Positions 4,637 through 44,516 of a DNA stretch of 64,000 nucleotides are shown piece after piece. Under the pieces are notes generated by a model that was given only the letters and a program-made list of their open reading frames with translations, was not told where the DNA came from and did no database searches. The translations under genes were made by a program, and so were the position numbers. The stretch's first letter is position 1; the number at the start of each line of letters is the position of its first letter. Where the stretch lies: the sequence record NC_048045.1. One strand, 5' to 3'.

Positions 4637-4698
4637 TATGTCGTCGTCCCGACCCTCTTAGGTGGAGTTTCCACTTCTGTCAACACACAACCGCCAGC
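4637..4698 (-). promoter_or_regulatory. leftward sigma70-type promoter of the repeated family
   Basis: TTGACA (4683-4678), 17 nt, TAAGAG (4660-4655), GACGAC at +1; 18-mer GCTGGCGGTTGTGTGTTG upstream. Confidence 0.75.
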
Positions 4699-4702
4699 AG
4701 GC

Positions 4703-4738
4703 AAAAAGAAACCGCCGACCCGAGGGCCGGCGGTTTTG
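4703..4738 (-). terminator. intrinsic terminator
   Basis: Minus strand AACCGCCGGCCC-TC-GGGTCGGCGGTT hairpin followed by TCTTTTT, just after the 620-aa ORF. Confidence 0.75.
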
Positions 4739-4756
4739 GGAGGTGTGGGCTCGCGA

Positions 4757-6619
4757 CTAGACGTCGAGGATGAAGTAGCGCTCGCTGGACGGGCCGTCGA
4801 CTTCAACGACAAAGCCCGCCGCCTTCAGGGCCTCGATTGCCTTGGCGGTGTGGTAGAGCGACAGCGAGGACGCTTCGCTGATCCGGGACAGCGAGAAGCC
4901 ATGCTCGGCGATCTTGAGGTCTTGCAGCGACAGTTCGTTCAGGGTGGTGATCACCACGCCGGCCGGGGCCAGTTCGTAGGCGCCCTCGAAATCGCGATCC
5001 TCCGAGAGGCGCACAAGGCCCTCCTGCTCGATGTTGTCCATCAGCGCGGCCAGGAACTCCGGATCGACGTACCCGACGTGGCTGCGGATTTCGCTCAGAT
5101 AGGCCGGGCCGTCGATGTCGACGGCATTGAGCACCGCCAGCAGGGCGATGCCCGGCATGACCGCGACGACTTGCTCGGCCTTCTCCTCCTCGGACAGTTC
5201 GACCGGGATGCCGGCGCCGCGCGACAGCGGGATCACGGCCTCGTCCGGGTGCGTCTCGATATAGGCCTTGATCGCCCGCAGCGCGGACAGGAAGTGCGCC
5301 TGGGGGATTTCGTCCAGCTTGAACGTGATGCAGTCATCGTCGGTCAGGGGGTAGTGGGCGCGCAGGTTGGCGACGATGTCTTCGGGCCAAGCCTCCAGCA
5401 CCGCGTCCCACAAAGCCTTGGGCATGTGGAAGGCGCCGAAGGACAGGGACTGCTCGGGCGTGGCGCTTTCGACGGCGGCGATGGACTCGTCGATGCTGGC
5501 GGCGCTGTAGCCGCCGACATAGCCGTTTTGCGACGCGTGGAGGACCTCGGCGGCCTCCTCGGCGCTCAGCCCCGTGATGGTCTTCTCCACGGCGTCCTCG
5601 GGCTCCTGGAGCGGCTCCAGGGTCTTCAGCCGATCGCTCAGGCCCTGGATGGACTCGTAGGCTTCGGCCGCGTCAACGTCGAGCTTCAGCGTCAAGCGCT
5701 CCGGCCGGGCGCTGAACTCCTCGCCCGTGATGGTGTAGGCGCCGTCGCGCTCCAGGATTTCCAGGTTCAGGAAACGCCCAGTGTCGTTGAGGGCGCGGAA
5801 GCGCGCATAGAGCGCGTCCTGCTCGATCAGATCGGTGAAGATGCCCTTGTCGAGCGCGAACAGCAGGTCACCGTAGGACCGCAACGCCTCGCCTTCGACG
5901 AAGGGCGCGCTCTCCTCGGGCTGCTCCCGCGTGAAGCGTAGGCCCGGCCCGGTGGTTTCGGTCTCTTGCGGCTTGATGAGGGGTTCTTCGATCACGGGGG
6001 CTTTCTCCTTGAAGATGATGGAGGTCAGTTCGTTCAGCGAAACCGACCAGTTGGTGTCGACCTGGGCGGCATAGCGGCCGGAAAGGTCGTTCCATTCGAC
6101 CTTGCCGATCTCACCGCTGAGCATCTTGCTGTCCCAGGCCGAAGGGAACGTGACGTCGGCGCCGCCGAAGAAGTCGGTCAGGTGCCCCGCGAAGGCCTCG
6201 ATGTCCTCGCGGGTCGCCGGGCGCACTTCACGCAGCGGGTAGGAGTGATGGACGCCGGGCCGCGCGTCTTCGATCTCGACGAAGATCGGCCCGTGCTCGG
6301 TGTGGAAGCGCTGGGTGTAGCCGATCATCTCGCCTTGGGGGGTCATGACCATCACCGGTAGGGCCGAGAACTTGTGGTTCAGCCGATCCACATAGTCGCT
6401 CGGATAGGCGGTGGTCGTGTAGATCAGGTTGTCGCCGCGCCGCACGCCGCTGTAGTCGATCACGCAGAGGGGCACGGCGGTGCCCGGCGGCAGGCGCGGG
6501 CGGTCGACGAAGACCTGACCATCGGCCACCGGCGGGGACGATCCATGGATATAGGGGAGCACCTCGCTGAAGGTGGCGGTCCAGGCGGGCTTGACCCGGT
6601 CGAGGAAAGTTTCGGTCAA
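4757..6619 (-). CDS. large hypothetical protein with two putative C-terminal winged-helix domains
   Basis: 620 aa; C-terminal ...LMDNIEQEGLVRLS...AYELAPAG and ...TAKAIEALKAAGFVVEV wHTH-like repeats. Confidence 0.8.
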   Translation of the reverse strand: MTETFLDRVKPAWTATFSEVLPYIHGSSPPVADGQVFVDRPRLPPGTAVPLCVIDYSGVRRGDNLIYTTTAYPSDYVDRLNHKFSALPVMVMTPQGEMIGYTQRFHTEHGPIFVEIEDARPGVHHSYPLREVRPATREDIEAFAGHLTDFFGGADVTFPSAWDSKMLSGEIGKVEWNDLSGRYAAQVDTNWSVSLNELTSIIFKEKAPVIEEPLIKPQETETTGPGLRFTREQPEESAPFVEGEALRSYGDLLFALDKGIFTDLIEQDALYARFRALNDTGRFLNLEILERDGAYTITGEEFSARPERLTLKLDVDAAEAYESIQGLSDRLKTLEPLQEPEDAVEKTITGLSAEEAAEVLHASQNGYVGGYSAASIDESIAAVESATPEQSLSFGAFHMPKALWDAVLEAWPEDIVANLRAHYPLTDDDCITFKLDEIPQAHFLSALRAIKAYIETHPDEAVIPLSRGAGIPVELSEEEKAEQVVAVMPGIALLAVLNAVDIDGPAYLSEIRSHVGYVDPEFLAALMDNIEQEGLVRLSEDRDFEGAYELAPAGVVITTLNELSLQDLKIAEHGFSLSRISEASSLSLYHTAKAIEALKAAGFVVEVDGPSSERYFILDV

Positions 6620-6628
6620 GGTGGTCCC

Positions 6629-7093
6629 CTATTCGCTCGGAATGACGGACGCCGGGGCGTCCAGGTCGAAGGTCTCGCCCTCATCGGTGAGGGCGAAGGT
6701 GGCGTAGCCGTCAGGGCTCTTGACCATGGACAGCATCTTGATCAGGCCGTGCTTCTCCAGCGCCTGGGCGGCGGGATAGTCGGCGTGCTGGTAGAAGACG
6801 TTGAGCCGCCCGCCGTTACCCAGGATGCGCACGCTGCGCAGCAACATGGCCTCTTGCTCGCTCAAGCCCAGCGTACCCTTGATCCGCACGCGGGCCAGAT
6901 GCACGTCGATCACATGCGTTTGGCCCTCATGCTCGAACTCGATGATCGCCAGCGGCCCGAACGAGCCGTTGGTCACCGCCAGGATCACGCCCTCGAACTC
7001 GGTCGTCTTGCGGGCGGTGATCGGGACGTAGTAGTCGAAGAACACGGTCTTGCCCTTCATCACGTGGTGGGCCTGGGGCGCGACAGTGCTCAT
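6629..7093 (-). CDS. hypothetical protein, possible C-terminal wHTH
   Basis: AQALEKHGLIK...FALTDEG motif. Confidence 0.75.
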   Translation of the reverse strand: MSTVAPQAHHVMKGKTVFFDYYVPITARKTTEFEGVILAVTNGSFGPLAIIEFEHEGQTHVIDVHLARVRIKGTLGLSEQEAMLLRSVRILGNGGRLNVFYQHADYPAAQALEKHGLIKMLSMVKSPDGYATFALTDEGETFDLDAPASVIPSE

Positions 7094-7341
7094 GTTGTGG
7101 AGTCCTTCTTGCGGGCGGTGTAGTGGAACTCGTCGTGCATGCGCCCGTCCAAGGTGATCTCGTAGCCGGGACCCAGTTCAGCCAGGATGCGCGCCTCGAT
7201 CTCGGCGAAGTCGATGTTGGCCATCGCACGCTCGGCCGCCGCCGCCTGCTCCAGAAAGCTGCTCCTGATCTTGGCGCCGGCCTCGGTACGGATCGGGATG
7301 TTCTGGATGGGTGGCTCGGACTTGGACAGGCGCTCGGTCAT
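7090..7341 (-). CDS. hypothetical protein
   Basis: ATG 7341 overlaps upstream stop. Confidence 0.7.
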   Translation of the reverse strand: MTERLSKSEPPIQNIPIRTEAGAKIRSSFLEQAAAAERAMANIDFAEIEARILAELGPGYEITLDGRMHDEFHYTARKKDSTT

Positions 7342-7886
7342 CAAGCCCTCTTTTTCTTGCCGACGTGCGAGGGGCGCGTGGCGGCCTTGTAGACGAATGG
7401 GCGATAGGCCATGCGGTGGTGGTCGATGCAGTAGACGCCCTGCGCGGTGCGGCACCCGCAATGGCCGAAGTTCTGGTCGGTCGGGTCGCCGTAGGGCCAG
7501 CGGCACATCCCGCGCCCCAGGCTCAGGGTGGGGACGACAGTCTCGGGACGCACCGGGATCGGCGCCTGCCCCTCGGGGACCAGTTCGATCTTGGGCTTCG
7601 AAGGCGTTTCGGCCTTGGGCTTGGCGGCTTTCTTGGGCTTGGCGACCTTGACCTTCTTGATCTGGATGCCGTAGCCGCGCGTTTTCTTGCGGCGCTCCTG
7701 GAGCGGCAAGACCTTGTCGCCCAGTTCGCCCTTCTGGCGCAGGCGATCGCCCATGCCGCAGACGGCGCTCTTGCTGCGCGGCTCGCGTAGCATTTCCCCG
7801 ATCTGCTTGGTCCCGACAGGCTCGGCCCAGAGCTTCTTGAGCAGGGCGATGTCCTCGGCCAGCCAGTCCGACTTACGCTTCTTCAC
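7341..7886 (-). CDS. gcrA: GcrA-like cell-cycle regulator
   Basis: N-terminal W..E.I..LKKLW..P....QI...L....SKSAVCG...RL; basic linker; C-terminal CRWPYGDP...FGHCG......YCIDH Cys/His domain typical of the GcrA family. Confidence 0.9.
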   Translation of the reverse strand: MKKRKSDWLAEDIALLKKLWAEPVGTKQIGEMLREPRSKSAVCGMGDRLRQKGELGDKVLPLQERRKKTRGYGIQIKKVKVAKPKKAAKPKAETPSKPKIELVPEGQAPIPVRPETVVPTLSLGRGMCRWPYGDPTDQNFGHCGCRTAQGVYCIDHHRMAYRPFVYKAATRPSHVGKKKRA

Positions 7887-7894
7887 CTTGAACG

Positions 7895-8080
7895 CTACTC
7901 CTGTTTTGCCTTGGCGGGGCGCCGGCGGCTCGTGGGATGGGGGACGAACACCAGGGCGACGGTCGAGCCGCCGGTGTAAAAGGTCCGGCGGCTATAGAGC
8001 CAACCGCCCTCGACTTCCAGGCGATCGGTGACTTGCCCGTCCGCTTCGTCGACTTTTTCCCATTTCGTCTTCTTGGCCAT
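7895..8080 (-). CDS. hypothetical protein
   Basis: First gene of the leftward unit; GAGGG upstream of ATG 8080. Confidence 0.7.
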   Translation of the reverse strand: MAKKTKWEKVDEADGQVTDRLEVEGGWLYSRRTFYTGGSTVALVFVPHPTSRRRPAKAKQE

Positions 8081-8102
8081 GTGCCCCTCGAAATTCGCCG
8101 GC

Positions 8103-8131
8103 ACCCTAGAGACGCGCCGATGTGTTGACAA
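8103..8131 (-). promoter_or_regulatory. leftward promoter of the divergent switch
   Basis: Minus strand TTGTCA, 17 nt, TAGGGT. Confidence 0.55.
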
Positions 8132-8158
8132 GCGCAAAATAGCTCTGGCTGGCGAGTG

Positions 8159-8202
8159 TTGACAAGGAGGCGGTGGTCCCTTAGAAGGGCGGCGACGACA
8201 AC
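8159..8202 (+). promoter_or_regulatory. repeated promoter P1
   Basis: TTGACA-17-TAGAAG, GACGACAAC 8194-8202, then GGAGG. Confidence 0.8.
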
Positions 8203-8216
8203 GAAAGGAGGCGCCG

Positions 8217-8516
8217 ATGCGCTACGTTCTGGAGTACATGGACTGCGACGACCAGATCGTCCAGGTCGACTTCGAGGCCGCCACCCGCGCCTCGGCGATC
8301 GCCAAGGCCAAGCGCCTCTTCGTGAAGGCGGTCGAGGCCAGCGGTCGGTCGATCTTCACCGGCTATATGTTCGAGGACCACTCGATCACCATGAAGGTGA
8401 AGCTGGTCCCGTTCGGCACCCTGAGCCGCTACCTGGGTCTGGGCAAGGTCACCGTCGCCAACATCGCGTTCGACGACCGCGACGCCAAGATCGCCCGCCA
8501 GGACATGGCCGCATGA
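8217..8516 (+). CDS. hypothetical protein
   Basis: AAGGAGG RBS after P1. Confidence 0.85.
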   Translation: MRYVLEYMDCDDQIVQVDFEAATRASAIAKAKRLFVKAVEASGRSIFTGYMFEDHSITMKVKLVPFGTLSRYLGLGKVTVANIAFDDRDAKIARQDMAA

Positions 8517-8725
8517 TCAGGGTCGAGGACGTCAAGCCCGGCTTCATCTATCGCGGCGGCAAGGGCGGCGCCCTGCGCCAAGTGGTCAGCTACGGCGCCC
8601 ACGAGGGCTTTGTCTGCTGGGCCAACCCGCACGATCGCCTGCCCTATGGCGGGTTCCTCACCACCACCTGCACCAGCCGGGCGTCGTTCGCCCGCTGGGC
8701 CGACAAGATCGAGGAAGAGGTTTGA
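8513..8725 (+). CDS. hypothetical protein
   Basis: ATGA overlap with upstream gene. Confidence 0.75.
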   Translation: MIRVEDVKPGFIYRGGKGGALRQVVSYGAHEGFVCWANPHDRLPYGGFLTTTCTSRASFARWADKIEEEV

Positions 8726-9012
8726 TCACCACCTTCCTACGCTGCACCCACCGCGACGCCGAGGGGCGTCGGTACCTGGAGTTCCGCGAGCCAGACCTCG
8801 TCCAGCGTCTCTATGTGCGCAAGCCGGCCGACGATTGGACCCAGGGCTACCCTATCGTCCTGGAGGACTTCTACAGTGGCTCGCCCGGCGGCAAGACCCT
8901 CTTCCAGGCCGGCAAGCGCCGGGGCTGCGGCATCGGAGCGTTCTTTCGCGCCTACCCCGAGGTCTACAGCCTCATCGTTTTGCGCCAGGAGGCACTCGAT
9001 GCCCAGGTCTAA
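8722..9012 (+). CDS. hypothetical protein
   Basis: TTG start overlapping upstream stop. Confidence 0.75.
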   Translation: MITTFLRCTHRDAEGRRYLEFREPDLVQRLYVRKPADDWTQGYPIVLEDFYSGSPGGKTLFQAGKRRGCGIGAFFRAYPEVYSLIVLRQEALDAQV

Positions 9013-9262
9013 GCGCCCCAACCTGCCGATCACCGTCGCCGACCTCAAGGCGTTCCTGGAGAAGTTCCCGGACGACATGAAGGTCGGCATCCGCGCCGGC
9101 GGCGGACGCTTCACTGGCTTCACCGAGGTCGAGGTCAAGAACCTCACCTCCTACGGCGCCGAGAAGGATCGCCTGACCATGGAGACCTCTCGCGGGGCCA
9201 ACATCTTCAAAGGCTACAAGGGCAAGATTTCCGAGCCCTTCGACGCCCTGATCTTCGACTAG
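8999..9262 (+). CDS. hypothetical protein
   Basis: GGAGG upstream of ATG 8999. Confidence 0.75.
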   Translation: MPRSKRPNLPITVADLKAFLEKFPDDMKVGIRAGGGRFTGFTEVEVKNLTSYGAEKDRLTMETSRGANIFKGYKGKISEPFDALIFD

Positions 9263-9270
9263 GAGGGACC

Positions 9271-9525
9271 ATGAGCAATCGCGTTTGGATCGAACTCGAA
9301 AAGCCAAAGACGGCCGAGGAAGGCAAGGCGCGCGCCGCGCTTCTCTGCAAGATGCTCGGCCGGCTGGGCGTCGAGTTCGGCCGCTATCCCGCCGTGTTCT
9401 GGAGTGAGCGCGACGGCAACTACGCCTTCACCCTCGATGGCGGTGGCAGCTACGCCGTCTGCGAGGGCGCTGATCCTGGCCACTGGTACAACCTGGACTA
9501 CATAGTGGAGGGGCTCGAAGCGTGA
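9271..9525 (+). CDS. hypothetical protein
   Basis: GGAGG RBS. Confidence 0.8.
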   Translation: MSNRVWIELEKPKTAEEGKARAALLCKMLGRLGVEFGRYPAVFWSERDGNYAFTLDGGGSYAVCEGADPGHWYNLDYIVEGLEA

Positions 9526-9920: not shown

Positions 9921-9921
9921 C

Positions 9922-10113
9922 GTGCTGACCAACGAGGAGATCACCTTCGCGGGCCTGATCCGGGCCATGGAGGACGCCCGCCGCGAAGCCCGCGCGGTGG
10001 GCGATCTCCTCAAGTCCGCCGAGATCGACGGCTGGTTCAAGGAGCACGCGCCGATCATCCGGGCGATCCGCGACAAGGCCGAAGCCGACGAATTCGACAA
10101 TCCGTTGGCGTGA
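9922..10113 (+). CDS. hypothetical protein
   Basis: Packed array. Confidence 0.7.
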   Translation: MLTNEEITFAGLIRAMEDARREARAVGDLLKSAEIDGWFKEHAPIIRAIRDKAEADEFDNPLA

Positions 10114-10163
10114 GAGTGTTGACAGCCTCGCCGCGCCCGGTTAAAAGCCTCCTCGACGACAAC
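10104..10163 (+). promoter_or_regulatory. repeated promoter P2
   Basis: 18-mer GTTGGCGTGAGAGTGTTG, TTGACA 10119-17-TAAAAG, GACGACAAC 10155. Confidence 0.8.
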
Positions 10164-10177
10164 GCAAGGAGCCTGTC

Positions 10178-13201: not shown

Positions 13202-13261
13202 GCTGGCGTTAGAGTGTTGACAGTCGTCGGGGCCTCCTCTATAGACACGCTCGACGACAAC
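13202..13261 (+). promoter_or_regulatory. repeated promoter P3
   Basis: 18-mer GCTGGCGTTAGAGTGTTG, TTGACA 13217-17-TATAGA, GACGACAAC 13253. Confidence 0.8.
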
Positions 13262-13273
13262 GAGGAGGCCCCG

Positions 13274-16807: not shown

Positions 16808-17031
16808 TCGATCACGTCTACCGCCGCGATCCGCGCGGCAAGGACTACGGCGTCCAGCGGATGGACCTGGGCGAGGCCCTGGCGGTGGTCGCCGCCGAGA
16901 AGCAGGACTTTCTCCTGCGGCTCGTCGAGGTCCTGCACGAGAACAATCTCCTGCGCGACGCAGACGTCCTGGAATTGCTCGGCAAGGGCTGGGGCCTGGA
17001 GGCCTACGACGTCCTGTACGAAGACGATTGA
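16804..17031 (+). CDS. hypothetical protein
   Basis: GTGA overlap. Confidence 0.7.
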   Translation: MIDHVYRRDPRGKDYGVQRMDLGEALAVVAAEKQDFLLRLVEVLHENNLLRDADVLELLGKGWGLEAYDVLYEDD

Positions 17032-17072
17032 CAACACTCTCGCGCCAGCATAGAGGTGTCTCCGACGACAAC
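17028..17072 (+). promoter_or_regulatory. repeated promoter P4 (operator motif inverted, in spacer)
   Basis: TTGACA-17-TAGAGG; CAACACTCTCGCGCCAGC 17032-17049; GACGACAAC 17064. Confidence 0.8.
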
Positions 17073-17085
17073 GAAGGAGGCTTCC

Positions 17086-17457
17086 GTGAAGCTCGCGACC
17101 CAAGACCGGACCGATCCCCGCCTGAACGCCGACTACCGCCTGATCAAGGCGGTCTTCTACTACGGCGGCCCGGCCGAGTACCCGATCCACCTGGACGAAC
17201 GCTGGAGCGCGGTGACGCCGGCCCAGGTCGAGGACCAGATTTCGGCCCTCTGCCGCGATCTCGCCAAGTGCTCGGGCAACACCCTGGCGCCGGCGACCTT
17301 CTACGAGCGCGCCAAGCTGAGCTTCGCCGAGGTCCCGCCGGTGTCCGACGAGTTCTGGGGCCTGATCTCCGAGACCACCAAGCAGAACATCCTCGCCATG
17401 AAGGATCGCTTCACGGTCCACGGCAGCGGCTTCCTCCTGTCCTGGGCCAAGGCCTGA
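17086..17457 (+). CDS. hypothetical protein
   Basis: GTG start after GGAGG. Confidence 0.8.
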   Translation: MKLATQDRTDPRLNADYRLIKAVFYYGGPAEYPIHLDERWSAVTPAQVEDQISALCRDLAKCSGNTLAPATFYERAKLSFAEVPPVSDEFWGLISETTKQNILAMKDRFTVHGSGFLLSWAKA

Positions 17458-18499: not shown

Positions 18500-18559
18500 G
18501 CTGGCGTTCTTGTGTTGACAGCGACCCTCATGCGGGCCTAGAACGTCATCGACGACAAC
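18500..18559 (+). promoter_or_regulatory. repeated promoter P5
   Basis: GCTGGCGTTCTTGTGTTG, TTGACA 18515-18-TAGAAC, GACGACAAC 18551. Confidence 0.8.
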
Positions 18560-18572
18560 AAAGGAGCCCCGC

Positions 18573-25404: not shown

Positions 25405-25457
25405 TTGACAACACTCTCACGCCAACATAGAACCCTCCTCGACGACAACGAGGAGGG
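25405..25457 (+). promoter_or_regulatory. repeated promoter P6 (inverted operator; RBS hairpin)
   Basis: TTGACA-17-TAGAAC; CAACACTCTCACGCCAAC; CCCTCCTC-GACGACAAC-GAGGAGGG stem-loop. Confidence 0.82.
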
Positions 25458-25461
25458 CCAT

Positions 25462-26123: not shown

Positions 26124-26500
26124 TGAAGCCGCTCGACGAACGCATCCGCGAAGCTATCGCCACTCCTCGTCCGGCCTGGATCGAGAAGAAGGGCGACCGC
26201 TTCCACGTCATCACCAAGGGCGTGCTGTTCCCCAACACGCGCAACGCCCTCTCCAAGTCCTGGAGCCGCCGCGCCGGCGCCCTCGCCTGCATCCGCCAGG
26301 ATTACCTCACCCTGCTGGAGGGCGACTGCCCGCTGCCGGAGGTGACCCAGGCCCAGCGCGACGCCTACCAGTTCCAGGGGGCCGAGCGCCGCGAAGCCGT
26401 CGAGGCCCTGAGCCGCGAACTGGGCATCCACCAGGACGAAATCCGCCGCGCCCTGCGCAACCTCGAAGGGCGTGGCCTGATCCGTTTCGAGGCGCGCTGA
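26123..26500 (+). CDS. hypothetical protein with C-terminal HTH
   Basis: EALSRELGIHQDEIRRALRNLEGRGLIRF. Confidence 0.75.
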   Translation: MKPLDERIREAIATPRPAWIEKKGDRFHVITKGVLFPNTRNALSKSWSRRAGALACIRQDYLTLLEGDCPLPEVTQAQRDAYQFQGAERREAVEALSRELGIHQDEIRRALRNLEGRGLIRFEAR

Positions 26501-26805
26501 TGCAAATCCTGACCTTCGCCGAGTTCATCGCCATGCCCGACGGCGTCCTCTACCAGGAGGTCACCGAGTACGGCTCACCCGTCGCGGGACTGGCGATCCG
26601 CCACTCCGTCCTCTATGACGGCGACCGCCCGTTCGACTTCATCTACGAAGAGGTCCTCGCCCGGACCGCCGACGGTGAGATGGACGCCCCGCTGATCCTA
26701 GAAGGGCCGGGCACGGCGCGCTGGGGCCTGTTCGACTACGACCTTCGCTACATCGTCTACGAGGAGGCCGATCGCAAGGCCCTGGCCGCGAAGGTCCTCG
26801 GCTGA
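26500..26805 (+). CDS. hypothetical protein
   Basis: TGATG coupling. Confidence 0.75.
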   Translation: MQILTFAEFIAMPDGVLYQEVTEYGSPVAGLAIRHSVLYDGDRPFDFIYEEVLARTADGEMDAPLILEGPGTARWGLFDYDLRYIVYEEADRKALAAKVLG

Positions 26806-26810: not shown

Positions 26811-26870
26811 CTTGGCGTTTGTGTGTTGACAGGGCAAGTCCGGTTCTGTAGACCTCTGCTCGACGACAAC
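26811..26870 (+). promoter_or_regulatory. repeated promoter P7
   Basis: CTTGGCGTTTGTGTGTTG, TTGACA 26826-17-TAGACC, GACGACAAC 26862. Confidence 0.8.
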
Positions 26871-26882
26871 GAGGAGGCCCCC

Positions 26883-30194: not shown

Positions 30195-30252
30195 TTGACA
30201 ACACTCTAACGCCAACATAGAAGGGCCTCCGACGACAACGCCGGAGGCCCTT
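30195..30252 (+). promoter_or_regulatory. repeated promoter P8 (inverted operator; perfect 11-bp hairpin over RBS)
   Basis: TTGACA-17-TAGAAG; CAACACTCTAACGCCAAC; AAGGGCCTCCG-ACGACAACGC-CGGAGGCCCTT. Confidence 0.82.
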
Positions 30253-30255
30253 TTC

Positions 30256-31546: not shown

Positions 31547-31552
31547 AACTTT

Positions 31553-31611
31553 GTTGGCGCGAGAGTGTTGACAGAAGCGTCCTGACGCCATAGAACCCTC
31601 TCGACGACAAC
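31553..31611 (+). promoter_or_regulatory. repeated promoter P9
   Basis: GTTGGCGCGAGAGTGTTG, TTGACA 31568-17-TAGAAC, GACGACAAC 31603. Confidence 0.82.
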
Positions 31612-31624
31612 GAAGGAGGCCCCG

Positions 31625-32011
31625 ATGGGCGCGCAACTGGAAATCAAGGAAGTCTTCGCCGCCTCGCAGGACGCCGTCTATTCCTGGCGTGGCGAGGAAG
31701 GTGACGAGTATCGCGTGATGAGCCTCGTTCACGTCCAGACGATGGACGGCCGCTGGTTCCTGATGCCGGCCATGCGTCCCTACTCGGACGTCGAGCGCTT
31801 CGACTTCGAGATGGCCTGCGAGGGCGAACCCCTCTTCGGCATGGCGATCGTCTACTGGGACGCCGAGGCCTTCGCCGCCAAGGTCCGCGCGCGGGGCGTG
31901 ATCCGCCCGGAGTTCTGGGTCGAGTACGAGCCCGACACCCGCACGACCGAGCAGCGCTTCGAGGACATGTGGATCGAAGAGCAGTACGACCGCATGGGGT
32001 ACGCCGCATGA
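31625..32011 (+). CDS. hypothetical protein
   Basis: AAGGAGG RBS. Confidence 0.85.
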   Translation: MGAQLEIKEVFAASQDAVYSWRGEEGDEYRVMSLVHVQTMDGRWFLMPAMRPYSDVERFDFEMACEGEPLFGMAIVYWDAEAFAAKVRARGVIRPEFWVEYEPDTRTTEQRFEDMWIEEQYDRMGYAA

Positions 32012-33299: not shown

Positions 33300-33631
33300 C
33301 CGACTACGACGCCTGCCTGACTAACTGGGTCGTCTGCCTGACGCCGATCCCGGTCGTCGTCCGGGGCGACGCCGCGCCCGAGCCGGGCGTGGTGCTCGTC
33401 GGCGAGATCATGCAGGACCGGAAGGGGCGCTGGCCGGACGGTCGTCTCGTTCACACCTCGGTGCTCCTGAGCGCGCGGGCGCTGATCAAGCCGGGCGAGG
33501 TCGTGCGCACCCTGCGCAGCCACTACCTACTGGGCCGGCCCGCCGAGGAGATCACCCTGCGCCATAGCTTGGGGGCTATGTTCGCCCAGGTCGTCATCCA
33601 ACCGCTTGACAACACTCTCGCGCCAACCTAG
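33296..33631 (+). CDS. hypothetical protein
   Basis: ATGA overlap; LVGEIMQDRKGRWPDGRLVHTS. Confidence 0.75.
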   Translation: MTDYDACLTNWVVCLTPIPVVVRGDAAPEPGVVLVGEIMQDRKGRWPDGRLVHTSVLLSARALIKPGEVVRTLRSHYLLGRPAEEITLRHSLGAMFAQVVIQPLDNTLAPT

Positions 33632-33650
33632 AAGGGTCGTCGACGACAAC
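33606..33650 (+). promoter_or_regulatory. repeated promoter P10 (inverted operator)
   Basis: TTGACA-17-TAGAAG; CAACACTCTCGCGCCAAC; GACGACAAC 33642. Confidence 0.82.
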
Positions 33651-33653
33651 GCC

Positions 33654-33683
33654 TGTCCGAAATTTGTACACATTTTTCGGACA
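33654..33683. promoter_or_regulatory. AT-rich inverted repeat in the P10 leader
   Basis: TGTCCGAAA-TTTGTACACATT-TTTCGGACA. Confidence 0.55.
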
Positions 33684-33698
33684 TCAGAGGAGGTCCCG

Positions 33699-34127
33699 AT
33701 GAGCTACCGCGAAGCTGAGATGGAAGCGCAAGCCGACTTCCACGCCAACGAGATGAACGTCGGCGACGGCGCCTGGGGGCGCTACGTCAAGACGCTGGAG
33801 AAGCGCCTGGGCTTCGACCTAGACGGCGACAACTCCGAGGAGGCCAAGGGCTTCTTCTGCGACATGGGCCACTCGCTCGACGACACCTTCGAGATGTTCG
33901 AGAAGGGCGTGTCGGTCGCCGACGCCGAGAAAGCGATCCTGCGCTCGTGCGCCTCGGCCGCCGCGCGCGCCGCCGACGCCGGCGTCCAGGCCCTCTGCGA
34001 GGCTCAGGACCGCGCCAAGGCGGCCGGCAAGACCGACTACGTCGATCTGCTGGAAAAGCAGATCAACGCCCTGCTGGACGAACAGAGCGCCGCCGCCACG
34101 GCGGCCGAGAAAGCGTTCGGCTGCTGA
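33699..34127 (+). CDS. hypothetical protein
   Basis: GAGGAGG RBS. Confidence 0.85.
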   Translation: MSYREAEMEAQADFHANEMNVGDGAWGRYVKTLEKRLGFDLDGDNSEEAKGFFCDMGHSLDDTFEMFEKGVSVADAEKAILRSCASAAARAADAGVQALCEAQDRAKAAGKTDYVDLLEKQINALLDEQSAAATAAEKAFGC

Positions 34128-34952: not shown

Positions 34953-34953
34953 C

Positions 34954-35794: not shown

Positions 35795-36066
35795 TCGTTT
35801 TCCTGCTCTGCGCCATCCCCTACGTTCTGGTCGGCGGCTGCATCTACGCGGCCCTGATCGACCGCTATGTCGCGCGCGAATACGTGTCGTCGTCCGCCGA
35901 TGAAGTGGGCGCGCGCCTGCTCTATGCGCTCTTCTGGCTGATCACCATTCCGATCCACATCCTCGTGATCCTGTTCGACGTCCTGCGGCATCGGGCCTAC
36001 CGCCAACGACACCTTCTGAAGACCAGCCACGACATCGGACCCTGGACCTACGCGGGCTGGCTCTGA
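35791..36066 (+). CDS. small two-TM membrane protein
   Basis: Two hydrophobic helices; ATGA overlap. Confidence 0.7.
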   Translation: MIVFLLCAIPYVLVGGCIYAALIDRYVAREYVSSSADEVGARLLYALFWLITIPIHILVILFDVLRHRAYRQRHLLKTSHDIGPWTYAGWL

Positions 36067-36083
36067 GCCTTGGCTGCAATGTG

Positions 36084-36129
36084 TTGACAAGCGGACGCGG
36101 CCTCCTGTAGAAGACTCCTCGACGACAAC
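36084..36129 (+). promoter_or_regulatory. repeated promoter P11
   Basis: TTGACA-18-TAGAAG, GACGACAAC 36121. Confidence 0.8.
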
Positions 36130-36140
36130 AGGAGGCCCAC

Positions 36141-36966: not shown

Positions 36967-37491
36967 ATGGGCCTGACGGGGTGCGGCTTCGCGCTCCTGA
37001 CGGCCGGCTCGGTCGCCTACGCGGTTGACCGTGGGGGCAGGGCGCTCAAGACGAGCGGCCTGCTCCTGTTCGCCACCTGGGCGTTCTCGGTCACCATCGG
37101 CTCGACCCTCGTGGCGGGCAACAAGCCCTACGTCTATGCCTGGGTGGACGGCATGTTCGCCGGCGCCGTTGGGGTGATGCTCACCGCGCGGTTCCAGCGC
37201 TGGCGGGCTGGGCTGTTCGCCCTGGCGATCCTCCAGATGTTCCTCCACCTCGCCATGATCGGCATCTGGGATTTCTCCCTGGCCGCGCGGCGGCTTCATG
37301 TCTTCTCGCTCAACCTCACCTACGCCCTGGAACTCTTCGTCCTCACCATCGGAGCGGCGGCCTATCGTCCAGGCGAGCGCGACGACGTGCCCGAGATCAT
37401 CGAGGTCCAGCACCACATCGTCGGCAAGGATGACGGGACCCTGCTCTACTGGCTTGAGTGTGTTGACAAAGCCAGACGTCCCGTCCTATAA
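36967..37491 (+). CDS. multi-pass membrane protein (about 5 TM)
   Basis: VAYAVDRGG motif followed by successive hydrophobic helices. Confidence 0.8.
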   Translation: MGLTGCGFALLTAGSVAYAVDRGGRALKTSGLLLFATWAFSVTIGSTLVAGNKPYVYAWVDGMFAGAVGVMLTARFQRWRAGLFALAILQMFLHLAMIGIWDFSLAARRLHVFSLNLTYALELFVLTIGAAAYRPGERDDVPEIIEVQHHIVGKDDGTLLYWLECVDKARRPVL

Positions 37492-37507
37492 GCACCTCGA
37501 CGACAAC
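37463..37507 (+). promoter_or_regulatory. repeated promoter P12
   Basis: TTGACA-18-TATAAG, GACGACAAC 37499. Confidence 0.8.
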
Positions 37508-37519
37508 GAGGAGGCCAGC

Positions 37520-37951
37520 ATGCCCACGCCCAAGACCGCAACGATCTCCCGCGCGCTCGCCTACTTGGCGATCACCGGCGGCACGAACTGCCTCACGATC
37601 AACACCCGGATCGCCCTGCACCCCTATCACGATCTGGTCCCGGTCAAGTACAAGATCGGCGACACCGAACTGACCCGCCACGTCTACAAGCTCACCGACG
37701 AGGGCCGCGCCCTGGCCGAGAAGAGCAAGCTCTGGAAGGGTCATCAGAAGCTCGTCGAGATGGGCTTCACGTTCAAGCCGTCCAAGCGCCGCCAGTCCTC
37801 GCGCTTCCTGTCCTATGACCACGCGACCGACGATTGCCGCAAGGATCGTCGCGGCGCGTTCATCTCGGGCGACAGCCCCTACGCCCAGCCGGCGCCGGGG
37901 CAGACGCCCGAGGGCAAGAAGGACTGGGACTACATCAAGGTGGAGGTCTAA
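37520..37951 (+). CDS. hypothetical protein
   Basis: GAGGAGG RBS; YKLTDEGRALA wing-like motif. Confidence 0.85.
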   Translation: MPTPKTATISRALAYLAITGGTNCLTINTRIALHPYHDLVPVKYKIGDTELTRHVYKLTDEGRALAEKSKLWKGHQKLVEMGFTFKPSKRRQSSRFLSYDHATDDCRKDRRGAFISGDSPYAQPAPGQTPEGKKDWDYIKVEV

Positions 37952-39383: not shown

Positions 39384-39384
39384 C

Positions 39385-40035: not shown

Positions 40036-40580
40036 ACATCCTCCAAGACCTCCTCGCCCATCCCGAGCACATGACCGACGGCTACGCCTCGGCGATCTCG
40101 ATGCGCATCGGCGACACCCTGGCCAGCCCTCGGCGCCAGGACCTCTTCGACCTCGCCACCGCCCTGACGAGCATCTCCCACGCCCTGTTGGCCCAGGCGC
40201 CGCAGGCGACGCGCGACGCCATCATCCACGACAAGTCCGACATGGGTGACCCGATCATGGCCGCCTTCCGCCTGGGGCAGTTGTCCATGGCCGGCGAGAT
40301 CATGGGCTACGAGGCCAGCCGCCGGGCTGACGATGACATTGTCGAGGTGGTGCGCGAACACCAAGCCTTCCTCGCCGACATCAGCGCGGGGCGCGGCACC
40401 CAGCGCGAACTCGCCGCCCAGTTCGGGATGTCGGGGCGTGAAGTCCGGCTCATCCTGCGCAAGCTGGGGAGCAAGGGCCTCGTCAATACCGTGCTCGGCA
40501 AAAAGGTCGGCGAGTTCGAGGCCCGGCTGACGCCGCTGGCCTCCTCGATCCTCGACCAGATCGAGAAGCGCGCCGCATGA
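40032..40580 (+). CDS. protein with C-terminal MarR-like wHTH
   Basis: TQRELAAQFGMSGREVRLILRKLGSKGLV...ARLTPLA. Confidence 0.75.
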   Translation: MNILQDLLAHPEHMTDGYASAISMRIGDTLASPRRQDLFDLATALTSISHALLAQAPQATRDAIIHDKSDMGDPIMAAFRLGQLSMAGEIMGYEASRRADDDIVEVVREHQAFLADISAGRGTQRELAAQFGMSGREVRLILRKLGSKGLVNTVLGKKVGEFEARLTPLASSILDQIEKRAA

Positions 40581-41185
40581 AGCCGCTCGTCACCCTGCGC
40601 GCCTGTCCGCCCGGCCCCTTCCGGTTCAAAGGTTCGCTCTTCCTCAAGACCGAGTATGGCACGATCGTCGGCCGCAAGGACGGCCTGGGCGAACCGCACC
40701 GCTACGAGATGACCGACCGCTCGGACGTCTACTGCCTGGGTTCGGGCGAGTATTTCTGGGGCGGGGTCAACGGCGACGTCGAGGCTCGCGAGAACCTGAT
40801 GGTCGAGCCGATCGACATCGAGGCGCTCGACAAGATCAGCGAGACCGCCAACATGGTCCAGGCGATCATGGAGGCCGTGGGCTTTGCCTCGCTCTACGAC
40901 AACGGCGCGGGCATGTACGCCCGCAACGTCCTGCGCGCCATCCAGTCGGGCAAGTACGAGTCGTTCGAGGCCCTGCTGCCGCCGCATGTTCCCAGGGATG
41001 GAACGGTGGTGCGGGAACTGGACCAGGACGTCTCCCAGGAGACGCGCGACCTGATCGGCGACGCCTTCGGGACCGTGGCGCTGATCCAGGTCGAGGACCC
41101 GGAGGCCACGCCGGTGACCTTCACCCTGGCCGAGGTCGACGCCCTGCTGAGCGCCCAGCGCCGCAAGCTGGAGGCAGACCTGTGA
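40577..41185 (+). CDS. hypothetical protein
   Basis: ATGA overlap. Confidence 0.8.
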   Translation: MKPLVTLRACPPGPFRFKGSLFLKTEYGTIVGRKDGLGEPHRYEMTDRSDVYCLGSGEYFWGGVNGDVEARENLMVEPIDIEALDKISETANMVQAIMEAVGFASLYDNGAGMYARNVLRAIQSGKYESFEALLPPHVPRDGTVVRELDQDVSQETRDLIGDAFGTVALIQVEDPEATPVTFTLAEVDALLSAQRRKLEADL

Positions 41186-41775
41186 GGCTGGATCGCACGC
41201 TCTCCGAGGTCGAGTTCCGCGTCCTGACCTATCTGGGCCTGCGCAAGGGTAAGGGCACCACGGTGGGTCAAGTCGCCGCAAATGTCCCCGGCGCCGGCGG
41301 CATCGCGGGCGAGGTGCTCGAAAGCCTGCGGGACTTGCAGGTGATTCGCAAGATCGACGCCGAGCATTTCTGGAGCTTCGTGATCCACGAGCGCGGCGAG
41401 GCCTATCTGAAGGGCAAGACCCCGCACGAGGTCAAGAAGCGGCGCAAGAAAGCGCTGCCCGAGCCGCCGCCGCTGATCGATCGGCTTCAGACGATCCTCG
41501 ACGAGAGCATCGCCGGCATCGAGCATCCCTCGCAGGTAGCGATCAACGTTGCCGTGCCCCGCGCCGACCTCCAGGAGGCCGTCAGGGGCCTGAAGCTGCG
41601 TGAGGTGTCCACCGGCCTGCCCGAGGACTTCCTGGCCGCCTGGGACGATCTGCGGCGGGCGATCACCGCGATCGAGACGGCGAGCCTTCATTCGATCGGC
41701 GAGGCCGTCCGCTGGCTCGAAGAAGAGCGGCAGAAATTTGACAACATGGTTCGCGACACGGCGAGAAACGCATGA
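41182..41775 (+). CDS. protein with N-terminal wHTH
   Basis: LSEVEFRVLTYL...TVGQVAANV...LESLRDLQVI...IHERGEAYL. Confidence 0.75.
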   Translation: MRLDRTLSEVEFRVLTYLGLRKGKGTTVGQVAANVPGAGGIAGEVLESLRDLQVIRKIDAEHFWSFVIHERGEAYLKGKTPHEVKKRRKKALPEPPPLIDRLQTILDESIAGIEHPSQVAINVAVPRADLQEAVRGLKLREVSTGLPEDFLAAWDDLRRAITAIETASLHSIGEAVRWLEEERQKFDNMVRDTARNA

Positions 41776-42098
41776 CCCCCAAGACCTTCATCGACAAGCT
41801 GCGCGTCGGCGCCCAGAAGGCGCTCGCCCGCTCCAAGGCCTGGACGCCCGAGGAGAACATCATCCTCCAGACCCTGGTCTGGGCGCCGGCCAACATCAAG
41901 CAGCGCTCGGACCTCTACGTGGCCGGGACCATGCGGGGCATGCTGGCGTTGATCTCGACGATGAGCGGCCGGGTCTCCGAGGAGATCAAGACCCTGCTCT
42001 GGATGGCCGGCGAGGCGACCGAGATCGACGCGCCTGTCCCGGATGATCAAGTCCAGGCGGCTTTGATGGCGCTCGACGGCCTCCACGCGAGGGCCTGA
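41772..42098 (+). CDS. hypothetical protein
   Basis: ATGA overlap. Confidence 0.75.
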   Translation: MTPKTFIDKLRVGAQKALARSKAWTPEENIILQTLVWAPANIKQRSDLYVAGTMRGMLALISTMSGRVSEEIKTLLWMAGEATEIDAPVPDDQVQAALMALDGLHARA

Positions 42099-42099
42099 C

Positions 42100-42516
42100 A
42101 TGCTGTCGCGTGCGGCGCGTAGGGCGCAAATGACGTTGCAAACCGACGAACCCAATCTGATCGGCAAGGGCTACTGGCACAAGGGTCAGTGGATTCGCAA
42201 CACCATGTCGATGCGGCTGAAGGCCTATATCGACCGCGTACCTGACGTGCGGTTCTTCGAGGGCGAGAAGGGCTACTATCCGGGCACCATGCTCGACCTG
42301 GGTGGTGACCAGTGGAGCATCACGCCGATCACCGGCCGGCTTAAGCGGAACGGCGAGGAAATCCCCGCCCCGCCGTTCTTCGACATCTCGTCCCGGCATT
42401 ACAGCCTCGCCCTGATGCGCAAGCTGGAGAAGGAAGGCGCGCTGGTCGCCGCCGTGCTCGACGTGCGCTATGACGGCAAGACGACCGTGGCGCGCTTTGA
42501 TCCTGTGGCCCGCTGA
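42100..42516 (+). CDS. hypothetical protein
   Basis: Packed array; start may be ATG 42130. Confidence 0.7.
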   Translation: MLSRAARRAQMTLQTDEPNLIGKGYWHKGQWIRNTMSMRLKAYIDRVPDVRFFEGEKGYYPGTMLDLGGDQWSITPITGRLKRNGEEIPAPPFFDISSRHYSLALMRKLEKEGALVAAVLDVRYDGKTTVARFDPVAR

Positions 42517-42800
42517 TGCCCAAGCTCTGGAACAAGCCTGTCCCGCTGAAGGCCCAGCCGATCCCCTACCAGATCGAGCGCTACCTGCTCGACCACCGCG
42601 ACGTGCGGCTGGTGCGCGGGCGTGATGGTTGGTTCAGACTCCAGGGCCGAACCGGCGTCAACCACTTCTCCCGCGTGCCTGGATCGGGGCGCTATTCGGC
42701 GCGCACGGCGCTGCAATGCGTCGACAGCCTTTGCACGATCGAGTCCTACGACGACCGCAACCGGCCCGACATCATCGGCCTGCATCGGGACGTCATCTGA
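42516..42800 (+). CDS. hypothetical protein
   Basis: TGATG coupling. Confidence 0.7.
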   Translation: MPKLWNKPVPLKAQPIPYQIERYLLDHRDVRLVRGRDGWFRLQGRTGVNHFSRVPGSGRYSARTALQCVDSLCTIESYDDRNRPDIIGLHRDVI

Positions 42801-43165
42801 TGTGGTTCGATCCCAAGGTCCGCGCCCGGCGCCTGATGCTGCCCCGCAACGACGGCAAGTTCCGCTTCAACGGCGACGACTTCCCGTCGCTGATCTGCGC
42901 CGCCACGGCCGCCGTGCTGACCGACAGTATGTGGCAGAGCTTCGACCAGCATCCGATCCTGCTGCGTCGGACTGACAGCGACTTCCAACTCGATTGCGAT
43001 CCTATCGGCCTGGAGGAAGATCGCCTGCTGTTCGACCAGGACATCGTGATCTCCAACCGCATCGCCATGAAGCTTGTCGAGATGGGCTACCTGCTCGTCG
43101 TGACCAACACCGAGCGCGGCGCGCCCCAGCGCCTGGAGGTGGCGGACGTGGAGCGTCGGACGTAA
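42800..43165 (+). CDS. hypothetical protein
   Basis: TGATG coupling. Confidence 0.75.
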   Translation: MWFDPKVRARRLMLPRNDGKFRFNGDDFPSLICAATAAVLTDSMWQSFDQHPILLRRTDSDFQLDCDPIGLEEDRLLFDQDIVISNRIAMKLVEMGYLLVVTNTERGAPQRLEVADVERRT

Positions 43166-43446
43166 TGGCGAGGTCGCGTGTACGCGGCGCCCGAGGGCGC
43201 CGGCGCTTTGTCGAGGTGCGCGAGCAGCTTCAATGCGGCCCCTGGAAGCACCTGATCCGGGCCTATCGCGGCTGGCGGCGCTATAACCCCGAGACCGGGG
43301 CCATGGACATGTCCGAGCGCTACAGCAACGAGACCATTCAGCGCATGGTGACCAGCGGGACGCTCGACGTCCACGAGTTCGACGAAGACGGCGTGGTCCA
43401 GGTCTATCGCCTGGGGGCCAGCTTCATCGGCTGGCGGTCGTCATGA
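43165..43446 (+). CDS. hypothetical protein
   Basis: TAATG coupling. Confidence 0.7.
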   Translation: MARSRVRGARGRRRFVEVREQLQCGPWKHLIRAYRGWRRYNPETGAMDMSERYSNETIQRMVTSGTLDVHEFDEDGVVQVYRLGASFIGWRSS

Positions 43447-43790
43447 ACTGGCAGGCCCACCCCTACTACGCCCAGTTGGGCTTCTCGCCTCATCAAGCGC
43501 GCTACTGGGATGTCGAGAAGGCCATGGTGCTCAACCTGTGGGATGACATCGGCCGCGTTGGCGGGCTCGAAGAGCCCAGCCACTGGAAGCTCGTCTGGCG
43601 GCCCTTGCAAGTGGGCCGTGAAGGGCGATATGTCCTGGTCACCGCCCAGGCGGGGATCGCCTACCCCATGGCGTATCCGAAGGGCTATCGCGGCGCGATC
43701 GTGCAGATCGCCGCCGACGAGGACACCCGGCTGCGGCCGACGGCGCGGGACGAGACAGGGCGGGTTCTGGAGTACCGGGGCATCCAGTGA
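43443..43790 (+). CDS. hypothetical protein
   Basis: ATGA overlap. Confidence 0.7.
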   Translation: MNWQAHPYYAQLGFSPHQARYWDVEKAMVLNLWDDIGRVGGLEEPSHWKLVWRPLQVGREGRYVLVTAQAGIAYPMAYPKGYRGAIVQIAADEDTRLRPTARDETGRVLEYRGIQ

Positions 43791-44407
43791 AGAGCGATTG
43801 GCGCGAGACCTTGGCGATGGCGTTCGACCGACCTCTCCCCGTGGAGGCGCCGGCCGATCCCTATGCCTTCGACCCCAACGCGCCGCCGCTGATCCTCGAC
43901 TTGACCCCCGAGGAGAAGCTGTCGCTGACCGAGTGCCGCTGGGCGGCGCTGGACGCGATGGGCGAGGTGATCGGCGAGTTCTGGGCGATCCCCCAGGCCG
44001 CCGAGGGTCTGGCCCATATGCTCTATCCGGGGCTGGCGGCCTATGCGCGCGGTGGTCATCGCGGGCGCCTGAAGGCCAAGCGCCTGCGCCGGCTCTGCGA
44101 GGCCCAGAACTGGCGCTGCTGCTACTGCCATGGGGCGATGCGGCTCCCCGACGAGTGCGACAGCCCCAACGAGCCGGATATGGCGACCCTGGAGCACGTG
44201 CATCGTTCGACCGACGGCGGCGGGAGCACCTGGGACAACCTGATCGCCGCCTGCCAGACCTGCAATTCCCATCGCGGCTCGGTCACGCCGCTCAAGTGGT
44301 GGAAGCTGCGTCAGAAGCTCCTCCCGGTCTGGCCCGCCTGCTCGACGATCACCGAGGCGGCGCGTTACGCCCTGCGCGGCTATGGCCTGCTGCGACGCGG
44401 CTGGTAG
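43787..44407 (+). CDS. HNH endonuclease domain protein
   Basis: LCEAQNWRCCYC...ATLEHVHRSTDGGGSTWDNLIAACQTCNSHRG. Confidence 0.9.
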   Translation: MKSDWRETLAMAFDRPLPVEAPADPYAFDPNAPPLILDLTPEEKLSLTECRWAALDAMGEVIGEFWAIPQAAEGLAHMLYPGLAAYARGGHRGRLKAKRLRRLCEAQNWRCCYCHGAMRLPDECDSPNEPDMATLEHVHRSTDGGGSTWDNLIAACQTCNSHRGSVTPLKWWKLRQKLLPVWPACSTITEAARYALRGYGLLRRGW

Positions 44408-44409
44408 GG

Positions 44410-44458
44410 TACAACCGTTTTTGGTTGTAAAGGCGTTTTACAACCGTTTTTGGTTGTA
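44410..44458. repeat. two identical 20-bp palindromic operator-like sites
   Basis: TACAACC-GTTTTT-GGTTGTA at 44410-44429 and 44439-44458. Confidence 0.85.
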
Positions 44459-44469
44459 GCGCGACTGTG

Positions 44470-44516
44470 TTGACGGGGTTACGAAAACAGACTAGATGTA
44501 GGGCCTCGACGACAAC
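44470..44516 (+). promoter_or_regulatory. repeated promoter P13
   Basis: TTGACG-17-TAGATG, GACGACAAC 44508. Confidence 0.75.

Follow-up and report, generated by a model that had tools for sequence, protein, structure and literature searches.

The right end of the genome of Caulobacter phage CcrBL10 raises the question of why a family of early promoters should carry, in either of two orientations, a conserved 18-bp element fused to the −35 hexamer, and what that element does. The window analyzed here, 64,000 nucleotides in length, is identical in sequence to positions 156,935–220,934 of CcrBL10 (MH588544.1, 220,934 bp) and thus represents the right 64 kb of the genome. CcrBL10 is a phiCbK-like phage (Dolichocephalovirinae, Poindextervirus) with a G+C content of 65% and is regarded as lytic. 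The promoters span a co-oriented block of small, mostly unannotated genes (gp216c–gp304). As described below, the element defines a candidate regulatory site that has been kept by selection from Caulobacter phages to jumbo phages of Brevundimonas; in CcrBL10 and phiCbK it lies within promoter-leader cassettes that have moved between genes.

The promoters were identified by a regular expression for the −35 hexamer, spacer, −10 hexamer, Shine-Dalgarno (SD) sequence and start codon, applied to the window. Exactly 13 rightward promoters and one leftward promoter are recovered (Table 1), which share TTGACA (TTGACG once), a spacer of 17–18 nt and a −10 of the form TA[GAT][AG]NN. No additional members are present in the remaining intergenic gaps between 4.6 and 45.6 kb of the window. 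The consensus for Caulobacter RpoD (sigma-73) consists of a −35 TTGaCgS and a −10 GCtANAWC, with 16–18 nt between the hexamers (PMC8144410). All 14 promoters fit this consensus, having TTGAC(A/G), a 17–18 nt spacer and TA-N-A/G-N-N, often TAGAAC or TAGAAG. An E. coli-type promoter scan detects none of them, as it demands T at the last −10 position, while the −10 of this family ends in C or G. Based on the consensus core elements and the location in the early region, these promoters should fire with host polymerase alone.

The 18-mer, GYTGGCGYKAGAGTGTTG, was matched in the window with up to three mismatches. It is found 12 times, compared to 0.42 expected, and 12 matches were reached in none of 100 shuffles. 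Three copies are exact on the plus strand, four are exact as the reverse complement, and four are looser. One further match with three mismatches (17277–17294) is intragenic and remote from promoters; it is within the chance expectation and probably a chance occurrence. Two arrangements are observed, which mirror each other about the −35. In the first (U), the motif is located upstream of the −35 and terminates on its TTG. In the second (S), the reverse-complement motif begins on the CA of TTGACA and the next A, fills the spacer, and stops 1 nt short of the −10. Seven of the 14 promoters carry degenerate copies only. When the scan was extended to both strands of the whole 220,934-bp genome, a check proposed along with the original prediction, 16 of 17 matches were found to be aligned exactly with a −35, 11 as U and 5 as S, with both strands represented. 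Each of these is located between 115 and 195 kb, in the early region, and the whole-genome scan gave no matches in the structural half or the terminal repeat. In each of the 16 copies the motif shares 3 bp (TTG or CAA) with the −35, and an internal dyad is absent. The predicted 14-member family, with an 18-mer on its −35 in two mirror arrangements, is therefore confirmed in full by the promoter search and motif scan, providing a complete and testable map of the early promoters.

The core of the element was defined using 45 distinct U-type copies, part of which were gathered with a pattern demanding TGGC and GTTGAC. The module is ∼21 bp, consisting of the 18-mer and the adjoining ACA, with a core of TGGC-N7-GTGTTGACA and the full form GYTGGCGYKAGAGTGTTGACA. 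The GTG immediately 5′ of the −35 is nearly invariant among U-type copies. The S copies are few in number and show almost no variation. Two other promoter assignments were rejected upon inspection. A sigma-54 promoter (TGGCAC-N5-TTGC) does not fit: TGGC and TTG are 2 nt too far apart, the hexamer reads TTGACA, and inverted copies of the element exist. A divergent leftward promoter arising from the inverted motif at S sites has no −10 at the right distance.

To assess whether the motif itself is maintained, orthologous promoters were compared between CcrBL10 and phiCbK, which have ∼80% genome identity. For six U pairs, the 15-nt block preceding the −35 shows identity at 76 of 90 positions (84%), compared to 54 of 96 (56%) in the spacer (Fisher p=3e-5). 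The pattern is reversed in two S pairs, with 7 of 30 positions identical upstream (23%) and 29 of 32 in the spacer (91%; p=7e-8). Between non-orthologous CcrBL10 promoters, similarity is confined to the motif block (0.87–0.90, compared to 0.28–0.38 in the flanks). Since the block is conserved reciprocally in U and S promoters, selection acts on the motif itself, and these alignments indicate that it is under selection wherever it is placed. The degenerate copies also each keep their own form across CcrBL10, phiCbK, Karma and Rogue; the degenerate motif of the gp245 promoter, for example, is retained in identical form in phiCbK, Karma and Rogue.

Such selection rules out a pure duplication relic, the fallback named in the original prediction. 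A functionless motif, hitch-hiking on duplicated or inverted cassettes and homogenized by gene conversion, is in our estimate the least probable of the explanations considered here. Cassettes do move (see below), and the S copies are almost identical. Four RNA-seq runs of phiCbK infection were located with a 98%-identical Karma locus and examined as assembled contigs, in which depth is flat and 5′ ends are invisible. RNA-library contigs break at the S repeat, indicating repeats of at least 27 nt. However, the motif block alone is conserved while the neighboring 15–17 nt drift, with U and S promoters showing reciprocal patterns; each degenerate variant is also preserved from one lineage to another; and the motif persists in Brevundimonas phages with diverged leaders and in cassette-free contexts. 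A relic of cassette duplication as the sole explanation is thus contradicted, even though the shuffling of cassettes is real.

Two genes change their promoter arrangement from one lineage to another. The gp261 promoter is S-type in CcrBL10 and Rogue, while its orthologues, phiCbK gp266 and Karma gp280, have U-type promoters. Conversely, gp273 is U-type in CcrBL10 and Rogue, and its orthologues, phiCbK gp281 and Karma gp296, are S-type. Thus, orientation is not tied to gene identity, and either promoter type can serve the same gene. In phiCbK, the first genes behind S promoters are gp245, gp275 and gp281; gp233, gp239, gp266 and gp143 follow U promoters with an exact or near-exact motif, and gp224, gp249, gp287 and gp290 follow U promoters with a degenerate one. 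Nucleotide alignments of gp261 with gp266 and of gp273 with gp281 lose homology at the −10, in the leader or at the SD. The U cassette in front of CcrBL10 gp273 (31547–31628) is homologous to that in front of phiCbK gp266 (26443–26524 of the phiCbK locus, L006), and the S cassette with a long leader precedes different genes in the two phages (33606–33701 in the window; L006 33967–34062). These breakpoints and cassette matches show that the exchange involved promoter and leader as a whole cassette. Such exchange between genes, rather than selection for two classes, is therefore the likely origin of the mixed U and S arrangements.

This observation weakens the suggestion, made in the original prediction, that orientation defines two functional classes, at least as judged from the orthologues available. 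In such a model, one factor would activate at U sites (in a class II-like manner, or as lambda CI does at PRM) and repress at S sites, giving two temporal classes. The geometry fits, with centers near −40 for U sites and near −25 for S sites. Lambda CI and phi29 p4 switch sign with position, and one promoter of the Brevundimonas phage Bajun joins both halves around its −35. But nothing in the family needs activating, given a consensus −35 and a good −10 everywhere; two orthologous genes have exchanged one arrangement for the other between lineages; and, with half of the promoters (7/14) having degenerate copies only, motif integrity splits the family as much as orientation does. We consider this model possible, but unlikely.

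The motif is not restricted to phiCbK-like phages, although these include both genera Shapirovirus and Poindextervirus among its carriers. BLAST searches with promoter-sized queries located the motif together with TTGACA in the Brevundimonas phages Bajun, Kikimora, Gurke, Kabachok, Domovoi and Papperlapapp. The five copies inspected (two in Bajun, and one each in Kikimora, Gurke and Kabachok) are U-type, with a spacer of 17–18 nt, a −10 and a diverged leader. In one Bajun promoter (L285, 33,140–33,190 of the record), both motif halves are inverted around the −35 to form a palindromic GGCGCGAGAGTG-TTGACAAG-CACTCTCGCC, in which inverted arms of 10–12 bp flank an 8-bp spacer. By its sequence, this promoter merges U and S into a single arrangement.

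The full 21-mer is also found in two Brevundimonas chromosomal loci (L267 and L270), a proteobacterial metagenome-assembled genome (MAG; L259), a Shimia genome (L248) and two IMG/VR contigs (L042 and L045). Distant homologues of CcrBL10 proteins are encoded in L267 (gp311 and gp315), L042 (the large terminase; a portal gene is also present) and L045 (gp098), and these three are accordingly interpreted as distant phage relatives. Homologues of CcrBL10 proteins were not found in L270 and L259, which appear phage-like from context only. In L267, L270, L259, L042 and L045, inspection shows that no −10 accompanies the TTGACA of the module, and that another promoter is located 11–48 nt downstream. 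These copies indicate that the motif is a stand-alone unit, a putative protein-binding module of ∼21 bp containing a TTGACA that CcrBL10 uses as a −35. In L045 (IMGVR_UViG_3300013479_000003), three tandem direct copies, ∼35 nt apart (1361–1448, minus strand), are located upstream of TTGACG-N17-TATATA and an 86-residue AlpA-like open reading frame (ORF). IMG/VR scans with the motif and with the leader found the cassette only in Karma, Rogue and CcrBL10; other matches were due to chance, with the exception of L042 and L045. Taken together, the reciprocal conservation, the Brevundimonas phage copies, and the stand-alone and tandem copies support the predicted binding site to the extent of a selected element, anchored on the −35 and very likely bound by a protein.

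Two of these loci have other features of note. An ORF homologous to the AlpA-like protein of L045 also follows the motif in L267, a Brevundimonas MAG locus; neither has a homologue in CcrBL10, even at E=10. In L270 (Brevundimonas vesicularis NZ_CP085234.1), an exact 21-mer (3264–3284, minus strand) is located upstream of an operon ending in DarT, an ADP-ribosyltransferase toxin, and a macrodomain protein, which form a DarTG pair (ORFs 908–1900 and 2–907, minus strand). One could imagine that an early DNA-binding protein of phiCbK-like phages recognizes the module as a portable tag, which the phage would place on its own −35 boxes for the timing of early transcription. Chromosomal islands and prophage-like elements of Brevundimonas, with the tag upstream of their own promoters, could thereby sense or respond to infection by such phages. 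The L270 operon with its DarTG pair and the triple array before the AlpA-like gene of L045 would then be instances, by analogy with satellites that copy the activator sites of their helper. We regard this scenario as very unlikely.

A general promoter element is another conceivable explanation, in which the motif would act on RNA polymerase or a host factor (as an extended −35, a UP-like element, or a site for a nucleoid or global regulator of Caulobacterales) to strengthen early promoters. The motif is always fused to TTGACA, the GTG just 5′ of the −35 is nearly invariant in U copies, and the phages carrying the motif infect two genera of a single family. However, a contact with polymerase could not work equally well once inverted into the spacer, stand-alone copies have no −10, and the motif is G+C-rich, unlike UP elements. 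An exact-pattern scan of 185,579 species-representative genomes (596 Gb), which degenerate host sites would slip past, yielded 40 matches, at or below the number estimated for chance, and no exact copy in any Caulobacter genome among these representatives. Thus, we consider a polymerase or host element improbable.

The cassette exchange and the palindromic Bajun promoter raise the question of whether the motif could be a recombination site. Tyrosine-recombinase sites, such as Rci/sfx of the shufflon and lox/FRT, resemble the motif in several respects: one conserved arm is located beside a core of 7–8 bp, both orientations are found, and a recombinase gene is present in the genome. The recombinase of CcrBL10, gp133 (L004 15271–15894), has 208 residues comprising a catalytic domain, with no recognizable N-terminal DNA-binding domain. 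As a core gene, it is shared by all CbK-like phages, from those of Caulobacter to those of Ruegeria, Erythrobacter and Sphingobium. The motif could therefore be pictured as the arm of a gp133 site with TTGACAA as the crossover core, similar to the asymmetric Rci sfx sites, and such sites would promote the shuffling or inversion of cassettes. Cassettes have visibly been shuffled between phages. In CcrBL10, phiCbK, Kikimora and Gurke, the promoter of the recombinase gene itself bears the motif. The Kabachok copy, which includes a TTGACA of its own, sits 11 nt upstream of the working −35, and that of Colossus is degenerate. The two inverted arms of the Bajun copy around an 8-bp spacer also match the lox/FRT format. 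On the other hand, exchange breakpoints fall at the −10, leader or SD, outside the −35 core, in which no rearrangement junction was found. Most copies are half-sites that coincide with promoters, and both arms are present only in the one Bajun copy. The U and S cores also differ at the central base (TTGACAA and TTGTCAA), which would hinder strand exchange. In the cross-lineage comparison, the motif is absent from the recombinase promoter of Bertelyvirus, DSS3P8 and EliS-L02, even though they have the recombinase. A role in recombination therefore seems quite improbable.

Whichever arrangement is present, a protein bound to the module would lie over the −35, and for this reason we favor, at roughly even confidence, an operator for the shut-off or damping of early promoters (or for titration), recognized by a putative sequence-specific DNA-binding protein of the phiCbK-like lineage. 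The TTGACA of the module would double as the −35 of host RpoD-dependent early promoters, which host polymerase alone would fire. Bound protein would cover the −35 in either case, with the remainder reaching to about −50 in U promoters or filling the spacer in S promoters. Both arrangements would thus do the same job, namely negative control, with early transcription being damped once the factor accumulates, and the degenerate copies would provide weaker, graded control. The tgrL gene of phiCbK belongs to the early genes, and for 41% of the genes of this phage, expression is highest at 15 min and falls afterwards (PMC10688885). The tgrL orthologue of CcrBL10 (gp214c) belongs to an operon under a promoter of this family.

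Several points weigh against an operator of this kind. A position near −40 is the classic site of a class II activator; the U site is centered there, so activation at U sites is possible. In the related elements, the module is located upstream of promoters, which is as typical of activators as of repressors. The binding protein could be a host factor common to Caulobacter and Brevundimonas, whose degenerate host sites an exact-pattern scan misses, and the similarity of the S copies could partly stem from recent cassette spread or gene conversion. Furthermore, no binding protein emerged from the candidates considered.

These candidates include the three types of protein named in the original prediction (XRE, GcrA-like and winged helix-turn-helix), none of which is supported. 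Matrices for TgrL and its four host paralogues RtrA, RtrB, CdxA and CdxB, derived from chromatin immunoprecipitation sequencing, share the core ACAA[C/G]C ... G (PMC10688885, S2 Table). Motif sites are absent from the top 25 genome matches of each of these matrices, and re-scoring of the sites with TgrL, RtrA and CdxA gave values no better than random windows (TgrL median 5.1 compared to 4.3). Thus, the published matrices do not score the sites, and XRE/TgrL was rejected as the binder on the basis of this scoring. GcrA requires a GANTC methylation site. GANTC is lacking from −30 to +60 in 13 of the 14 promoters, and the motif has GAGTG instead, which does not support the GcrA-like protein as the binder. 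The winged helix-turn-helix proteins gp263 and gp294 have weak Pfam matches and are confined to Caulobacter phages; with no detectable homologues in the motif-bearing Brevundimonas phages, they are not supported either. The HTH_3 proteins gp141 and gp100c, as well as the XRE protein, occur across the subfamily, including eight Brevundimonas phages. They are formal candidates, which are also present in lineages where the motif is not seen. A further protein considered as a shut-off factor, the T5-A1-like gp117c, was rejected. It occurs in >1,100 phage records, most of which label it A1, DNA transfer protein or nuclease, and this breadth and these annotations provide no evidence for sequence-specific binding.

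The arrangement can be compared to several known systems. Mycobacteriophage L5, a cluster A phage, reportedly uses its gp71 repressor at an operator and at 'stoperators' (described, it is said, by Brown et al. in EMBO J in 1997). In both systems, a short asymmetric site is found in many copies in the short intergenic spaces of one phage genome, overlaps the −35 of an early promoter and contains the hexamer TTGACA/TGTCAA. However, the L5 sites are 13 bp in length, have a fixed orientation relative to transcription, and belong to a temperate phage with a known repressor, whereas the CcrBL10 site is 18–21 bp, occurs in both orientations (11 compared to 5 genome-wide) and is always on a −35. Lambda CI at OR2 (PRM/PR) and phi29 p4 are position-dependent phage regulators. 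Their sites also abut or overlap the −35, with an effect that depends on the location relative to polymerase, but are dyad-symmetric or restricted to fixed promoters; the CcrBL10 site is asymmetric and mirrored over 14 promoters. An asymmetric operator that incorporates the −35 hexamer and is active either way round would, if true, be an unusual and compact means of controlling a whole promoter family.

In their modular exchange, the CcrBL10 cassettes resemble the promoter-early stem-loop (PeSL) cassettes of T4-type phages (PMC2839356, PMC4122927). In both, repeated early-promoter units are located at gene boundaries in a variable early region, with a hairpin in the PeSL cassettes and, to a limited extent, in those of CcrBL10, and related phages differ by gene swaps with junctions inside the cassettes. 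In PeSL cassettes, the stem-loop or terminator is upstream of the promoter and there is no operator-like block, unlike in CcrBL10, where hairpins form within the leader and engage the SD, an invariant block follows the −10, and the 18-mer is under selection of its own. When the family was evaluated as PeSL-type units, the promoter and conserved leader were found at all 14, with a significant hairpin at 2, downstream of the promoter. Modular shuffling of the PeSL type thus occurs in an unrelated lineage of high-G+C siphophages.

Neither the promoter family nor the motif is described in the phiCbK genome paper (PMC3556154) or elsewhere in the literature searched, subscription-only papers being outside the search. 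Papers on Dolichocephalovirinae promoters were not found in this literature, and searches with literal motif sequences returned only primers and the like. The phiCbK-like phages are standard tools in studies of the Caulobacter cell cycle, and ∼75% of their genes have no known relatives. The site provides a direct bait for finding the regulator, and the promoter-leader cassettes would be useful as strong parts in Caulobacter genetics.

The invariant leader block, CGACGACAACG, is located 5–8 nt after the −10 of every family promoter and is followed by AGGAGG and the start codon. It has 22 matches with at most one mismatch, compared to 2.8 expected (copies in the window are listed in Table 1). 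Because of its spacing from the −10, the block is placed at or near the 5′ end of the transcript, and it probably represents the first transcribed bases. Diverged versions, GACGACAT and GACGATTAGACA, are present in Brevundimonas phages. In many of the leaders, the SD is paired with an anti-SD stretch. A significant hairpin was detected at only 2 of the 14 promoters, those at 25405 (25427–25460, z=−5.1) and 30195 (30217–30255, z=−6.2). The equivalent of the latter hairpin is labeled a rho-independent terminator in the phiCbK and Karma records (L006 31509–31536), though it lies between the promoter and the gene.

Table 1. Promoters of the CcrBL10 family and their elements. Positions are those of the window; the −35 start is its first nucleotide in the direction of transcription, and the leader block is CGACGACAACG.
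Promoter	Extent	Strand	Arrangement	−35 start	Motif	−10	Leader block	Remarks
gp216c-gp215c-gp214c operon	4625..4698	−	U	4683 (to 4678)	degenerate, 4698-4681	TAAGAG		leader GGACGACGACA; GTG start 4624; gp214c is an XRE protein, the TgrL orthologue
gp222 (first rightward)	8141..8216	+	U	8159	4-nt deletion (GCTGGCG-AGTGTTG)	TAGAAG	8193-8203	
gp229	10104..10177	+	U	10119	exact, 10104-10121	TAAAAG	10154-10164	
gp234	13202..13273	+	U	13217	exact, 13202-13219		13252-13262	
gp241	17028..17085	+	S	17028	exact, 17032-17049	TAGAGG	17063-17073	
gp245	18500..18572	+	U	18515	degenerate (3 mismatches), from 18500		18550 (one mismatch)	spacer 18 nt
gp261	25405..25461	+	S	25405	exact, 25409-25426		25440-25450	strong anti-SD/SD hairpin in leader
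gp265	26811..26882	+	U	26826	degenerate (3 mismatches), from 26811		26861-26871	
gp270	30195..30255	+	S	30195	exact, 30199-30216		30230-30240	leader hairpin, then CTTTTC
gp273	31553..31624	+	U	31568	exact, 31553-31570		31602-31612	
gp279	33606..33698	+	S	33606	exact, 33610-33627		33641-33651	long leader, additional hairpin
gp286	36066..36140	+	U	36084	strongly degenerate, only TGGC and GTGTTG retained		36120 (one mismatch)	spacer 18 nt
gp289	37448..37519	+	U	37463	degenerate, 37448-37465		37498-37508	
gp304 (last)	44452..44529	+		44470 (TTGACG)	most degenerate (GTAGCGCGACTGTGTTG)		44507-44517	

A few additional features of the region were observed. The annotated start of gp289 (37463) falls on the −35 of its family promoter, and the true start is likely the ATG, preceded by an SD, near 37520. 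On the minus strand, 8090–8135 contains TTGTCA-N17-TAGGGT, a likely leftward promoter for the operon of gp221c and the GcrA-like gene (gp220c). Its spacer starts with ACACATCGGCGCG, resembling a decayed S motif, and its −35 is the mirror image of the TTGACA that begins at 8122 on the plus strand. Ahead of gp311, a long gap (46950–47166) has TTGACA-N16-TTAACC together with TTAAC/TTAAT repeats, which constitute a different promoter-like kind outside the family. Directly 5′ of the last family promoter, a hairpin, ACAACC-GTTTTT-GGTTGT, is present in two tandem copies (44405–44465), one of which was scored as terminator-like.

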